Assembly (NCBI RefSeq): GCF_006345805.1
Contig: NC_043026.1
Location: forward strand, 682,001-746,000
Direction: 5' to 3'
Source: Octopus sinensis
Taxonomy: Eukaryota
DNA: 64,000 bases
Both the position numbers and the translations under genes were made by a program. The notes under the pieces were generated by a model, which saw only the letters and a program-made list of their open reading frames with translations, was not told where the DNA came from and made no database searches. Positions 4,566 to 37,990 of this stretch are shown here, piece after piece (the first letter of the stretch is position 1; every line of letters starts with the position of its first letter).

Positions 4566-4618
4566 TTAGTTCGATTTCATTCGAATGAATATGGCCATGG
4601 AATCAGCTGTTCCATATC
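4566..4618 (-). CDS. Gene A last coding exon ([17 protein letters not shown])
   Basis: actttcag acceptor, phase 1, TAA at 4566-4568; total CDS 891 nt = 296 aa + stop. Confidence 0.88.
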
Positions 4619-5398
4619 CTGAAAGTAACAACATCACCATCATTATCATTGTCGTCATCATCACCTTCATCATCATCATCATCATCATCATCATCATCAA
4701 CAACAACATCGTCGTCATCATCATCATCATCATCATCATCATCATCATCATCATCATCATCATCATCATCATCACACGTATACACACATACAGACAGAAG
4801 CATACCCCCTCCTCACAACACACACACATATCCTGAACCCAGTTAGCAACATATACTAATATGACAGAGGGGGGGAGAAAGGGAGAGGGAAAGACATTAC
4901 ATTTGTAGTATGAGGGACGAAGTACCATCCACCTTCCTCTCAGGTTCTCTTGCAGCGTGGACTTACATTTGAAAACACCCTAACCGCCTAACCCCTGGCC
5001 AAAACCTAAAGTTAAATTCCCTCTAGAACGTATGTCCACGCACGTCAGTAGAGCCCGACCACCCCGAAGCAAAGAGGTCCTACTTCGCTTTTACCTCATC
5101 CTCCACAACATATAACTAGAAGAGAGAGAGAGAGAGGGAGGGAACGAGACAGACAGACAGATAGATAGACAGAGAAGAAAAGGGCTGAGTGAACGGAAGA
5201 AGCATTAAAACGAGATAAACATTAAAACGCGTCTAATGTGAAATAAATCGGCGTCGAATGAGAGACGCTGAACAGACGGCGCCAAAATGGCCGTAGTTCC
5301 CTACGCCGCATACACAATAGACTCAGCTCAATCTAACTCACTGAAACTTCGAAACAGAAAGCCAAGATAATAAAATAGACAGACGACGAAATACTTAC

Positions 5399-5562
5399 CG
5401 TTATGCCATATGGTTTTCGACTTTGTGTTGGAGTATAAGATTGCAGGGAAATAGCTTAATTTTTCCCAACCACATACATGGAATTTTTCATTAATAGACA
5501 ACCAGCCGGTATCTCCGTGACATGCGTTATGAAAAGCTGACACATAGAATCGGCGGATCTTT
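5399..5562 (-). CDS. Gene A coding exon 4 (164 nt; KIRRFYVSAFHNACHGDTGW...TIWHN)
   Basis: ctctacag acceptor, G|gtaagt donor, phase 2->1; lies inside ORF 5328-5738. Confidence 0.9.
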
Positions 5563-6856
5563 CTGTAGAGAGAAAAATATAAAAGGGCTGGTTTCAGATC
5601 TTTTTGCTGTTTAACCTCCGCAATGTGCATTACTTTATCTGGAAAGGCATTTATTAATGTCAACGAAGTACAAAACTCTAATCTTCTGCTAAGTAAAATT
5701 CCCTGACTTAAATATACATGTTGTAGCGCTCCAGCCATTTCGTGAAGGCCTCATGAGTAACAGTTTTATGATCTTTTTGCAGCTGTGATAAAAATATCAT
5801 ATTGCTCTACCTTCGGTATTCGAATACTATTTTATCCACCTTGTTTCACAATTTATGTGCTTACTTGTGCATGTATGTATGTATGCATGTATGTATGTAT
5901 GTATGTATGTATGTATGTATGTATGTATGTATGTATGTATGCATCTATGTATGTATGTATGTATGTATGTATGTATGTATGTATGTATGTGTATGTATTT
6001 GTGGGGGTTTATGTTTGAATGTGTGCACGTTTGTTCCCCACTATCGCTTGACAACCGGTGTTGCTGTGTTTACGTTCCCGTAACTTGGATGGATGGATGG
6101 ATGGATGGATAGATAGATAGGTAGACAGAAAGACAGACAGATAGGTAGATAGATAGATAGATAGATAGATAGATAGATAGATAGATAGATAGATAGATAG
6201 ATAGACAAGTGGGTAGATAGACAGAGAGGTAGATAGCTACATAAATATGTAGATAGACACATAGATAGACAGACAGACAGACAGACAGACAGACAGACAG
6301 ACAGACAGATAGATAGATAGATAGATAGATAGATAGAGAGAGAGATAGATAGATAGATAGATAGATAGATAGACAGACAGACAGACAGACAGATAGATAG
6401 ATGGATAGCTAGATAGATAGATAGATAGATAGATAGATAGATAGATAGATAGACAGACAGACAGACAGACAGACAGACAGACAGATAGATAGATAGATAG
6501 ATAGATAGATAGATAGAGAGAGAGATAGATAGATAGATAGATAGATAGATAGATAGATAGATAGACAGACAGACAGCGTTTATGCAAACATAATCTTTAA
6601 ATAATAATCTGTATATAAAAATTATTCGTGCAAAGAATATAATGCAAAATTTATTTTCGATTTCGAAAATAAATTCAAAATAACTCGTGACGAATGCTCT
6701 GTATGAGGAATTTCGGAGAGAAGGAAAAGAATTGAGAACATCCATCTTGGACTTAACTTTCATTTTTTCTTTTTCTTAAGCGGTTCTGAAAGGGATTAAA
6801 TTTGAACCCGGAATCTAAAGCCAATTGAGTAATATGAAGTGATAATGATGACCTAC

Positions 6857-7020
6857 CCAACGCCCGTTATTGAGAAATGATTTTGGGGGCTCGTTGCCAG
6901 ATCGTCCCATGGGGAACTTTTCAGGTTTTTAGCAGAGAACCAGTTTTCAAGAGTTGTATTTCGTCCATTAAACACCATTGTTACTACGGCTGTTTCCTTT
7001 TTGTATAACACAAGTTTCAC
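6857..7020 (-). CDS. Gene A coding exon 3 (164 nt; VKLVLYKKE...DLATSPQNHFSITGV)
   Basis: ttttcag acceptor, GG|gtaggt donor, phase 0->2, open frame; not covered by the ORF track. Confidence 0.9.
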
Positions 7021-35365: not shown

Positions 35366-36883
35366 TATTATTATTATTATTATTATTATTATTATTATTA
35401 TTAATATTATTATTATTATTATCATTATCATTATTATTATTATTATTATTATTATTATTATTATTATTATTATTATTATTATTATTATTATTATTATTAT
35501 TATCATTATTATTATTATTATTATTATTATTATTATTATTATTATTATTGTTATTATTATTAATATTATTATCATTATCATAATAATAATAATAATAATA
35601 ATAATAATAATAATAATAATAATAATAATAATAATAATAATTATTATTATTATTATCAGTATTATTATTATTATTATCATAATCATTATTATCATTATCA
35701 TTATTATTATTATTATCATTATTATTATTATTATCATTATTATTATTATTATTATTATTATTATTATTATTATTATTATTATTATTATTATTATCATTAT
35801 CATTATTATTATTATCATTATTATTATTATCAGTATTATTATTATTATCATTATTATCAGTATCATTATTATTCTTTTTTGCTTCTTTCAAATTTGCTTC
35901 CATTTCTTGCCGAGTGCCTTCCCGACTCCTAGGGCAAAGAAACTCATAGTATACATTGGTAGGGCATTAAACTCAACTCAATAGTTCGTTCATTTTTTTT
36001 AAAGTGAAATTAAAATACATGGGTAGTAATAGTTCTCACATCGACAATGCTCTTCTCTATTATTATTATTATTATTTTTAGTATTATTATTTTTATTACT
36101 ATTATTATTATTATTATTATTATTATTATTATTATTATTATTATTATCATTATCATTATTATTATTATTATTATTATTATATTATTATTATTATTATTAT
36201 ATATATTATTATTATTATTATTGTTGTTGTTGTTGTTGTTGTTGTTGTTGGTGGTGGTGGTGGTGTTTATTGTTCTTATTACTGTTGCTGTTTCTGCTAT
36301 TATTATTTTTGCTGTTGTTGTTGTTGTTGTTATTATTATTATATTATTATTATTATTATTATTATTATTATTATTATCATTACTATTATTATGTTTTTAA
36401 TGACGCCAATAGGGTGATGGAAGATCTTTTGGGGGAATAGAGAGAGAAAAGACAAACAGACAGAGACAGCGACAGACGGGCAAACAGACTGACAGAGAAT
36501 TGTCCCAGATACGTGTAAATAAAAACAGGATGATCGCGAGCGGAATACCTTTGACAATAGCACAGCTCGATCGGGCTTGTCCAGGAGCAAAACGGCAAAA
36601 ACAAAAACATTGATGATTATTACACCTACGACACCCTGATAATATAGCCATAGTTATTGTATTTCTGAATAAATGATGAGATCGTTACGGCCTGAAAAAC
36701 TGTGGTTATAGATCTGCTCAGTTACGACTCAACAAAAAGAGTTATAAGTTTAAAGACTGTCCCGAGCCTCCAAGTCCATCAGGCCGCAACTTGTTACCAT
36801 TTGTAAGGAGTTTAAATGACCGAGAGTACAATACTACCTGATTAAGAGAACATCCGTCCATCACTGGGGTTGACACTGCTCCA

Positions 36884-37630
36884 GCTGTCAGTTGTGCTTA
36901 TTTTAAATAGAGTGGACTGAAGTAACGTGAAATTGAAGTACCTTGTCGAAGGGTTCAGATATCACAATCTTATGACCGTGGGAGACCACAGGACCTTAAC
37001 CTGTGTTAAGCTGTCAGTTGTGCTTATTTTAAATAGAGTGGACTGAAGTAACGTGAAATTGAAGTACCTTGTCGAAGGGTTCAGATATCACAATCTTATG
37101 ACCGTGGGAGACCACAGGACCTTAACCTGTGTTAAGCTGTCAGTTGTGCTTATTTTAAATAGAGTGGACTGAAGTAACGTGAAATTGAAGTACCTTGTCG
37201 AAGGGTTCAGATATCACAATCTTATGACCGTGGGAGACCACAGGACCTTAACCTGTGTTAAGCTGTCAGTTGTGCTTATTTTAAATAGAGTGGACTGAAG
37301 TAACATGAAATTGAAGTACCTTGTCGAGGGGTTCAGATATCACAATCTTATGACCGTGGGAGACCACAGGACCTTAACCTGTGTTAAGCTGTCAGTTGTG
37401 CTTATTTTAAATAGAGTGGACTGAAGTAACATGAAATTGAAGTACCTTGTCGAAGGGTTCAGATATTACAATCTTATGACCGTGGGAGACCACAGGACCT
37501 TAACCTGTGTTAAGCTGTCAGTTGTGCTTATTTTAAATAGAGTGGACTGAAGTAACATGAAATTGAAGTACCTTGTCGAGGGGTTCAGATATCACAATCT
37601 TATGACCGTGGGAGACCACAGGACCTTAAC
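36884..37630. repeat. Tandem array, 126-bp unit x ~5.9, in the 5'UTR intron of gene B
   Basis: Unit starts at 36884, 37010, 37136, 37262, 37388 and 37514; units differ at about 3 positions. Confidence 0.95.
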
Positions 37631-37842
37631 TGCTACACCACGCATCATATTCTTAAATCTAACACACACACACACACACACACACGCACGCACGCAGACA
37701 CACACACAAAACACACATACATTTACATACGCATGCATATACACACGAACACATACACATATACGCGCGCAGGTTCAGACACAAGCACAAACAACCGCTC
37801 ACTCATGCACACGAAGTATTTAGATTATGAAACAAAACCTAC

Positions 37843-37990
37843 CTTTGGTGGGGCTACTGGCAGCACCTACGCTTTCAGTGGTCAACGGGAGAATTTGTTA
37901 AATCTGTCCTCTATGGCTGTCCAGTAATTTCCTCAGCTGGGATGACCGTCCACTTATATTAGTAATGTTCCAAAATATCAAGGTTGGCCA
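37843..37990 (-). other. Gene B upstream 5'UTR exon (5' boundary unknown)
   Basis: Donor AAAG|gtaggt; aligns with 15610-15715 upstream of gene A. Confidence 0.55.

Follow-up and report, generated by a model that had tools for sequence, protein, structure and literature searches.

What do two adjacent, nameless genes on an octopus chromosome encode, and how did the pair come to exist? The question is raised by a 64,000-nucleotide stretch of the Octopus sinensis genome (CM016888.1:682001-746000 of GCA_006345805.1; hereafter the window, numbered from its first letter), in which an initial annotation, made from the letters alone, had described a tandem pair of genes for secreted proteins, each with a PAN/Apple-like module followed by an unnamed domain. 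Both genes (i.e. gene A, LOC118768577, and gene B, LOC115226528) were already predicted in RefSeq, and in kind they would fall among the lineage-expanded, secreted, lectin-type proteins. New here are the placing of the unnamed domain in a very large, unstudied family that adjoins the fibrinogen-related superfamily, the fusion of this domain to a PAN-like module in an octopod gene array, and the mosaic history of the pair.

Gene models were rebuilt from the raw sequence by locating the open pieces, reading their flanking bases and joining the pieces. Both genes comprised five minus-strand exons of 331, 179, 164, 164 and 53 nt, separated by introns of phases 1/0/2/1. All of these introns were of the GT...AG type, with donors GTAAGT, GTATGT, GTAGGT and GTAAGT and with AG acceptors behind good polypyrimidine tracts. 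Each coding sequence was 891 nt in length and specified a protein of 296 amino acids (aa) with no internal stops, confirming the exon lengths, phases, splice sites and product sizes that had been described previously. The two proteins differed at exactly 66 positions (77.7% identity), as a manual count had already given. Protein A was an exact match to XP_036371243.1 and protein B to XP_029653389.2, both of which are named 'uncharacterized protein' in RefSeq. The gene pair consists of intact neighbouring tandem paralogues.

Exon 1 of gene A (14824..15154, minus strand as for all exons below) contains the start codon and encodes a signal-like leader (aa 1-27) and the PAN/Apple-like module (aa ~35-110), ending in a phase-1 donor, GTAAGT. 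The first third of the C-terminal domain is encoded by exon 2 (10952..11130), which begins at W114 (i.e. the W of a GGGW motif discussed below) and includes C146 and C151. Exon 3 (6857..7020) specifies a beta-hairpin, VKLVLYKKETAVVTMVFNG, the conserved NTT sequon, the WFS...SSPW.DL motif and a first hypervariable loop (aa 214-225). Exon 4 (5399..5562) encodes the RRF... motif, the invariant C239 and C255, on either side of GD.GW, and P..LYS; its hypervariable segments (aa 234-243 and 249-262) lie at about 5451-5537. The last strand and the stop codon are in exon 5 (4566..4618). In gene B, the start codon, leader and PAN/Apple-like module are encoded by exon 1 (33346..33676), followed by exon 2 (30773..30951), exon 3 (29265..29428), exon 4 with the Cys pair (27938..28101; variable loops at about 27990-28076) and exon 5 with the stop codon (27128..27180). 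Some details of the earlier description required amendment. The spacing given as W-x6-MGA is W-x7-MGA, that given as C.WE-x4-P is C.WE-x5-P, and gene B reads IIYS rather than ILYS. The pair had also been extended to 37843; as the start codon of gene B is at 33676, that end is ~4.2 kb too far out, provided that the interval holds no untranslated 5' exon. No further coding piece was detected by tblastn in 33677-37843, and neither a third gene copy nor extra family exons were detected by this method in the whole 64-kb window. No RNA genes were found in the window.

The C-terminal domain, a globular region of ~185 aa coded by exons 2-5, matched no Pfam or NCBIfam model and had no significant sequence match in the PDB. 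A single-sequence search yielded 46 homologues. The sole non-octopod homologue (P0046) carries the domain-homologous region after three EGF modules and a piece that matches only the first ~45 positions of Pfam Fibrinogen_C. Relatives of P0046 are myxobacterial proteins bearing the NCBI name 'fibrinogen-like YCDxxxxGGGW domain-containing protein'. The octopod domain aligns with these proteins from end to end, starting exactly at the Trp of GGGW and running to the C-terminus; this Trp (i.e. W114) was invariant in 19 of 19 aligned sequences. The same unit, an A-subdomain of fibrinogen type followed by the post-GGGW domain, was also present in the corals Porites and Oculina.

The post-GGGW family was defined here by profile, and its invariant and near-invariant columns were taken from three alignments (A1, A2 and A3). 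A profile search over 1.84 billion representatives, with clusters at 50% identity, returned 1,464 clusters at E <= 1e-3, of which 889 reached E <= 1e-10 and 279 reached E <= 1e-30. Together with the 46 homologues of the single-sequence search, for which E-values reached 1e-200, these clusters exclude chance as an explanation of the observation. Many proteins contained two to four copies of the domain, and 262 copies were found in 199 fetched proteins using a local hidden Markov model. Named animal members, which span molluscs, echinoderms, hemichordates, amphioxus and corals, came from Branchiostoma, Acanthaster, Anneissia, Ptychodera, Saccoglossus, Argopecten, Mizuhopecten, Ylistrum, Crassostrea, Elysia, Pomacea, Porites and Oculina, and bacterial members from metagenome-assembled genomes of Myxococcota, Polyangiales and 'Deltaproteobacteria'. 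Partner domains included EGF, Ig, TSP1 with adhesion-GPCR, disintegrin and the Cys-rich repeats of myxobacteria; two more partners, a C-type lectin-like region and, in amphioxus, possibly a ZP region, were identified solely by eye. The fibrinogen A-subdomain stands ahead of the domain in corals and bacteria and is absent from the bilaterian versions looked at. The family hallmarks (i.e. the invariant W, W-F-S...S-x-W/Y-x-D, C...D-x-G-W...C and a terminal Y-S...A-D-x-x-A-(I/V)-F-(I/V)) were all present, over the full length of the domain, in proteins A and B. Nearly all members are named 'uncharacterized' or 'hypothetical' and a few carry automatic, similarity-based names; one Pomacea member was auto-named 'Fibrinogen C-terminal domain-containing protein', and Pfam finds no fibrinogen domain in it. 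These labels, and the lack of a Pfam name, agree with the initial annotation, which had linked the C-terminal motifs only to uncharacterised marine-invertebrate proteins and had given them no name. The occurrence of the domain in Myxococcota and corals, fused to a fibrinogen A-subdomain, had not been foreseen there, nor had the mosaic nature of gene A.

Does this domain belong to the fibrinogen-related superfamily? It is most likely a very divergent fibrinogen-related domain without subdomain A, because its position, length, secondary-structure order and Cys pair fit such an assignment, which is drawn from sequence comparison and predicted models. In the coral and myxobacterial homologues, the domain occupies the place of the B and P subdomains of fibrinogen-related domains (PF00147; i.e. 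those of ficolins, tachylectin-5, snail fibrinogen-related proteins (FREPs), angiopoietins, tenascins and FIBCD1) and has about the same length. An AlphaFold2 (AF2) model of the domain alone, generated for an O. bimaculoides paralogue (P0036) from an 84-sequence alignment, was confident, with a predicted local distance difference test (pLDDT) of 89.8 and a predicted template modelling score of 0.87. The top 50 PDB matches of this model in Foldseek were mostly fibrinogen-related (FGL1, ANGPTL3/4/6, ficolins, fibrinogen chains, angiopoietin-2 and MFAP4), and a whole-protein AF2 model gave the same picture. The elements run from a first strand behind the Trp through a helix and a long beta-hairpin to a loop-rich region, in which the Cys pair lies next to G-W, and to a last strand with a basic end; this order resembles that of fibrinogen domains, a likeness that serves as a lead and not as a test. 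The invariant C239...C255 pair flanks D-x-G-W, and its likeness to the Cys pair of the fibrinogen P-subdomain is a pattern resemblance only.

A number of results weigh against this assignment, and membership of the superfamily is not proven, as no formal PF00147 criterion places the domain there. None of the Foldseek matches of the domain-only model was significant (best E = 0.16, template modelling score (TM) 0.34-0.41, root-mean-square deviation (rmsd) 8-10 A). With E-values of 0.16 or above, a fold shared with fibrinogen-related domains is therefore not demonstrated. The test for a fibrinogen-like fold that the initial annotation had proposed was nevertheless well aimed, with such domains as most of the best matches, none of them at a significant level. 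PF00147 did not match A, B or the other octopod members even at E <= 1, and in the bacterial and coral homologues it covers only profile positions ~2-53 of 221 (i.e. the A-subdomain). Unlike fibrinogen-related domains, the octopod proteins lack this subdomain, with its first disulfide and CDM...GGGW, and keep only W114 of it; they go undetected by PF00147 and have TM values < 0.5. Sequence profiles of the domain found nothing in the PDB, and a profile that included the A-subdomain matched that subdomain only. The calcium- and acetyl-binding residues of ficolin type were not identified in the domain. Other matches were set aside as due to chance, namely those to exfoliative toxin C (E = 0.65 over 50 residues), to PsaJ on the gene B leader, to Cbl and to an RxLR effector (E = 0.12-0.44), to galectin, congerin and TLDc folds (TM around 0.2) and every match from a viral structure library.

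Two further groups of proteins bear on the identity of the domain. Intelectins, or X-type lectins, are secreted glycan-binding proteins, and members of this group (intelectin-1, XEEL and fish serum lectin) were the best PDB matches of the profile that included the A-subdomain (E = 5e-11 to 2e-8). They show a similar organisation, with a fibrinogen-type start, CDM...GGGWT, followed by a region that is invisible to fibrinogen profiles. However, the match ends at the first strand after GGGW, and for the octopod-type region intelectins were found neither among the listed top-50 fold matches nor in the profile search. The NF040941 proteins of Myxococcota are, by comparison, true homologues over the whole octopod domain (23-26% identity, with E = 1.8e-12 in a single-sequence search and far lower values with profiles), whereas the NF040941 model itself (GGGWT_bact) represents only a 46-residue A-subdomain motif that is absent from the octopod proteins. 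This model produced strong matches of 69-75 bits in P0046 and P0049-P0051 and no match in proteins A and B. The bacterial proteins differ further from those of octopods in having Cys-rich myxobacterial repeats, EGF or disintegrin modules in place of PAN, and in falling into a separate clade together with the corals.

The size and descent of the octopod family were also examined. At least 27 distinct loci were found in O. sinensis, 15 on this chromosome and others on unplaced contigs. Sets of similar number were present in both O. bimaculoides and O. vulgaris; for Argonauta hians, two members were returned. Maximum-likelihood analysis of the domain placed every octopod sequence in a single clade (support 100/97), with P0085 the first to branch and Argonauta nested inside, and all copies bearing an A-subdomain formed a separate clade (99/98). 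Judged from these sequences, the family is octopod-specific, tandemly expanded and monophyletic, in line with the lineage expansion that had been proposed from the gene pair. Lineage-specific tandem expansion is known for molluscan FREPs, which the octopod family resembles in this respect. A recent horizontal transfer from bacteria to octopods was considered and rejected on the grounds that the genes have four spliceosomal introns and that the octopod sequences group with bilaterian forms lacking the A-subdomain rather than falling within the clade of bacteria and corals. Three coral proteins that combine the A-subdomain with the domain (P0202, P0206 and P0210) grouped with myxobacterial proteins (99/98) and not with bilaterian copies. 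This grouping suggests either an ancestral full-length form or an older transfer, in one direction or the other, between bacteria and cnidarians.

At the N-terminus of the proteins, the leader (residues 1-27; core VTTVLLLTLTTILTV, Kyte-Doolittle values of 2.1-2.5) has a 15-residue hydrophobic core followed by T-V-T-S and then (D/N)-Q, an arrangement that is conserved among paralogues and fits the -3/-1 rule, upholding the description of this segment as signal-like. The N-glycosylation sequon NTT and six Cys are likewise conserved among paralogues. Proteins A and B are, on these features, probably small, N-glycosylated and secreted. Exon 1 codes precisely for the leader and a module of ~75 residues, and the C-terminal domain sets in with exon 2; the phase-1 intron 1 therefore marks a domain boundary.

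By its predicted fold the N-terminal module appears PAN-like, and it is not a verified PAN domain. Its predicted helix-on-sheet fold resembles that of PAN/Apple domains (PF00024, PF08277; i.e. the HGF N domain and those of plasminogen, factor XI and MIC4), and in octopods it is contained in one exon. The AF2 model had strands at residues 36-58, a helix at 62-71 and strands at 76-110, with pLDDT values of only 50-83 in the module. In Foldseek, the module matched the HGF N domain and NK1 with a probability of 0.99 over 91 columns (rmsd 4.3, weak E-values; TMt 0.50 for 2hgf) and the apple domains of T. gondii MIC4 with a probability of 0.92; for all matches of PAN type (HGF N, HGF hairpin-loop and MIC4 apple), probabilities were 0.77-0.99 and E-values 0.13-0.46. 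A four-Cys PAN core, C-x3-C-x4-C-x12-C, is present in P0085 (LOC118764338), a distant O. sinensis paralogue on another chromosome, and the UniRef name of another relative, P0006, is 'Apple domain-containing protein'. Unlike PAN/Apple domains, for which four Cys are expected in the core disulfides, the genes of the tandem cluster keep only one invariant pair, C65/C86. Weak Pfam hits in several family members add to the likeness, but all of them were below the gathering scores and fall short of a PAN assignment. PAN_1 scored 12.2 bits in gene A (cut-off 21.4, E = 0.17) and 16.8 bits in P0085 (cut-off 21.4, E = 0.006), PAN_3 scored 17.0 bits in P0006 (cut-off 21.1, E = 0.005), and no PAN model matched gene B at all. 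The earlier assignment of a PAN-like module thus holds at the level of fold resemblance (Foldseek 0.99 to the HGF N domain) and falls short in Pfam score, in E-value (0.13) and in the retention of one of two disulfides. Gene A also encodes an extra, seventh Cys, C61, in the PAN-like helix (about 14972-14974) that gene B lacks. An unpaired C61 in mature protein A could form a dimer.

Comparison of the two loci at the DNA level provided an account of how gene A originated. The identity of ~78% is correct as a mean, but it hides two halves, as nucleotide identities were ~78-79% in exons 1-2 and 96-100% in exons 3-5. In its first copy (96..7517), a young homology block runs from the 3' flank of gene A through exons 5, 4 and 3 into ~500 bp of proximal intron 2; a collinear second copy (22170..29896) covers the 3' flank, exons 5-3 and proximal intron 2 of gene B. 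The copies were 91-96% identical (BLAST, indels included). Substitution divergence between A and B was lowest in the 3' flank (0.38%) and climbed through intron 4 (1.15%) and intron 3 (3.8%) to proximal intron 2 (4.3%), a gradient that suggests more than one exchange. Outside the block, A and B align only in exons 2 and 1, at ~79%. Exon 1 of gene A and ~1.2 kb upstream of it (14776..16331, minus strand) were collinear, at 86-87% identity, with the LOC118761735 locus on an unplaced contig (L004); in the same stretch only the exon aligns with gene B, at 79%. The products of LOC118761735 were 97% identical to that of gene A over exon 1 and only 63% over exon 3. Gene A is thus chimeric, with parts from two subfamilies that meet in intron 2: its 5' end matches LOC118761735, and its exons 3-5 and 3' flank match gene B.

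This case was based on DNA comparison with the compact LOC118761735 locus because the model of another relative, P0002 (LOC118768578), spans 243 kb with family genes inside. For the same reason, the protein halves of P0002 and P0008 were dropped as proof of recurrent recombination. P0002 lies on the same chromosome, outside the window; its 296-aa Gnomon model encloses at least three other called genes, one of them with a 293-aa product, the size of a family member. The model probably joins exons of different paralogues, and 'mosaic' family proteins derived from annotation therefore need care.

Selection was assessed separately for the two halves. In the older half, the ratio of nonsynonymous to synonymous substitution rates (dN/dS) between A and B was 0.35-0.44, indicating that the genes are under selection. 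The segments that vary across the family (aa 214-228, 234-243 and 249-262) surround the invariant C239/C255, and the 12 amino acid replacements between A and B in the young half coincided with positions at which 12 other paralogues are hypervariable (Mann-Whitney p = 1.6e-6). As a counterweight to a reading of loop diversification, the 12 nonsynonymous changes against 1 synonymous change in the young half are not significant (Fisher p = 0.31) and fit relaxed constraint just as well. For exons 3-5, positive selection was examined and is not established (dN 0.042 versus 0.030 in the neighbouring introns, Fisher tests not significant).

What might these proteins do? We consider it somewhat better than an even prospect that A and B are functional genes of an octopod family of secreted proteins with PAN-like and fibrinogen-like parts, which act in lectin-like recognition and whose array is diversified by recombination. 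Under this proposal, the leader would be cleaved to leave a reduced PAN/Apple-like module followed by the C-terminal domain. Bilaterian versions would have lost the A-subdomain, with the PAN-like module taking its place in octopods. By analogy with ficolins, tachylectin-5, snail FREPs and intelectins, the C-terminal domain may bind an extracellular ligand, most likely a glycan or other surface determinant. Binding might occur through the hypervariable loops around the C239-C255 disulfide, as at the P-subdomain ligand site of fibrinogen-related lectins, and the PAN-like module might add a second binding or oligomerising surface. The array diversifies through duplication, both tandem and segmental, and through recombination among its paralogues. 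In gene A, a promoter and exon 1 of the LOC118761735/LOC118768578 type are combined with exons 3-5 and a 3' flank (at least 4.4 kb) that were recently copied from, or exchanged with, gene B, with a breakpoint in intron 2. A bolder version, advanced tentatively and possible rather than probable, is that the domain represents a large, unnamed and structurally unsolved fibrinogen-related branch shared by Myxococcota, corals and bilaterian marine invertebrates, and that the octopod array is a germline-diversified, FREP-like repertoire in which new specificities arise by intron-2 recombination and rapid loop replacement around C239-C255. A literature search on both loci, on the bacterial motif name and on octopus Apple-domain proteins found no mention of any of them.

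Other readings start from the same observations. The packing of variability into a few loops is more typical of binding-site diversification than of a structural component of the extracellular space (mucus, egg-coat, cuticle or sucker lining, or matrix) in which the domain serves as a polymerising or matrix-binding module, and the octopod proteins, as small single-domain units, carry neither repeats nor polymerisation modules. Matrix-type architectures are found elsewhere in the family, however, as in a Branchiostoma protein with four tandem copies and then a ZP-like C-terminus (seen by eye), in fusions to EGF and C-type lectin or to TSP1 repeats in an adhesion-GPCR-like protein, and in the tandem domain repeats of scallops and starfish; the odd C61 of gene A could also make an intermolecular bond. 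Overall, we regard a structural role as unlikely. Less likely again is that the N-terminus is an uncleaved signal anchor, by which the proteins would be type II membrane receptors displaying both domains. In favour of an anchor, the hydrophobic stretch may be taken to extend over ~18 residues (I8-V25), a charged n-region is absent and AF2 gave no confident structure for aa 1-32. The core, though, is Thr-rich, includes a Pro and has only about 15 strongly hydrophobic residues; it is followed by the conserved small residues T-V-T-S, as at signal-peptidase sites, and an anchored protein would have essentially no cytoplasmic tail (about 7 residues).

The remaining alternatives concern venom and decay. 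Small size, secretion, Cys content, rapid tandem expansion and fast-evolving loops would be shared with salivary-gland effectors acting on prey in the manner of venoms, but these traits are generic. As the proteins bear no likeness to a known toxin family, the lone toxin-named match being the chance one described above, and as the domain has a wide occurrence that takes in non-venomous filter feeders, corals and bacteria, a salivary role is considered very improbable. Hardly to be credited, finally, is the view that one or both genes are decaying or non-functional, or artefacts of annotation in a repetitive region. The neighbourhood gives it some footing, since a copy of the gene B locus ~210 kb away, 98.9% identical, has a broken exon 4, the neighbouring 243-kb Gnomon model is probably chimeric and no purifying selection is detectable in the young half. 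Against this, both genes keep an intact frame through their five exons, the splice sites are canonical, none of the invariant family residues has been lost and dN/dS in the older half is that of constrained genes.

Several features of the surroundings were recorded. The window has a GC content of 25-45% and many microsatellites. The copy of the gene B locus (L002; CM016888.1:488437-511497) corresponds to window positions 22000-43005 and thus covers at least 21 kb, including ~9 kb upstream of the gene, at 98.8-98.9% identity. Exons 1-3 are intact in this copy and exon 4 is split over different frames; RefSeq represents it as a truncated 192-aa product, LOC118768482. L002 is either a very recent, decaying segmental duplicate or an assembly duplicate. 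Upstream of gene B, the region 33677-37843 contains AT-rich trinucleotide repeats, the open reading frame (ORF) of a LINE tail and a 126-bp tandem repeat. This repeat (36883-37630, 5.9 units at 99% identity) begins ~3.2 kb upstream of gene B, close to the end of the pair as first annotated, and is also present in L002. At the L004 locus, on unplaced contig VCDQ01005972.1, a partial family copy with exons 2 and 3 (24704-27024) lies beside LOC118761735 in the opposite orientation, indicating that the array holds inverted as well as direct repeats.

Repetitive elements were also found. Short tandem arrays of a 184-bp unit occur at 11601-12077 (in intron 1 of gene A), 40312-40735, 57020-57435 and 59807-61129, with 85-90% likeness; the unit had no tRNA or Rfam match and looks like a dispersed repeat or satellite-forming element. 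Transposable-element remnants, situated both between the genes and within them, lie on the minus strand at 17153-17479, 12459-12749 and 34485-35165, with related fragments at 31819-32181, 32687-32986 and 37984-38217. The types represented are the ORF of a GIY-YIG nuclease (Penelope-like, E = 3e-7), part of a retroelement aspartyl protease and a LINE tail that carries a zf-RVT motif. At 43156-43255, 100 consecutive N mark an assembly gap amid AT-rich trinucleotide repeats.

Cephalopods are not known to have the large expansions of FREPs, C-type lectins and C1q proteins that have been described for other molluscs, and knowledge of their recognition repertoire is poor. The octopod array of at least 27 genes for PAN-like and fibrinogen-like proteins, predicted to be secreted, is a concrete candidate for such a repertoire. 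The pair of genes A and B provides a clean and datable case of chimeric gene formation within a tandem array. The domain family, with more than 1,400 clusters at 50% identity, has no Pfam model, solved structure or studied member. It links the 'fibrinogen-like' proteins of bacteria to those of animals, and its annotation would reach thousands of proteins.

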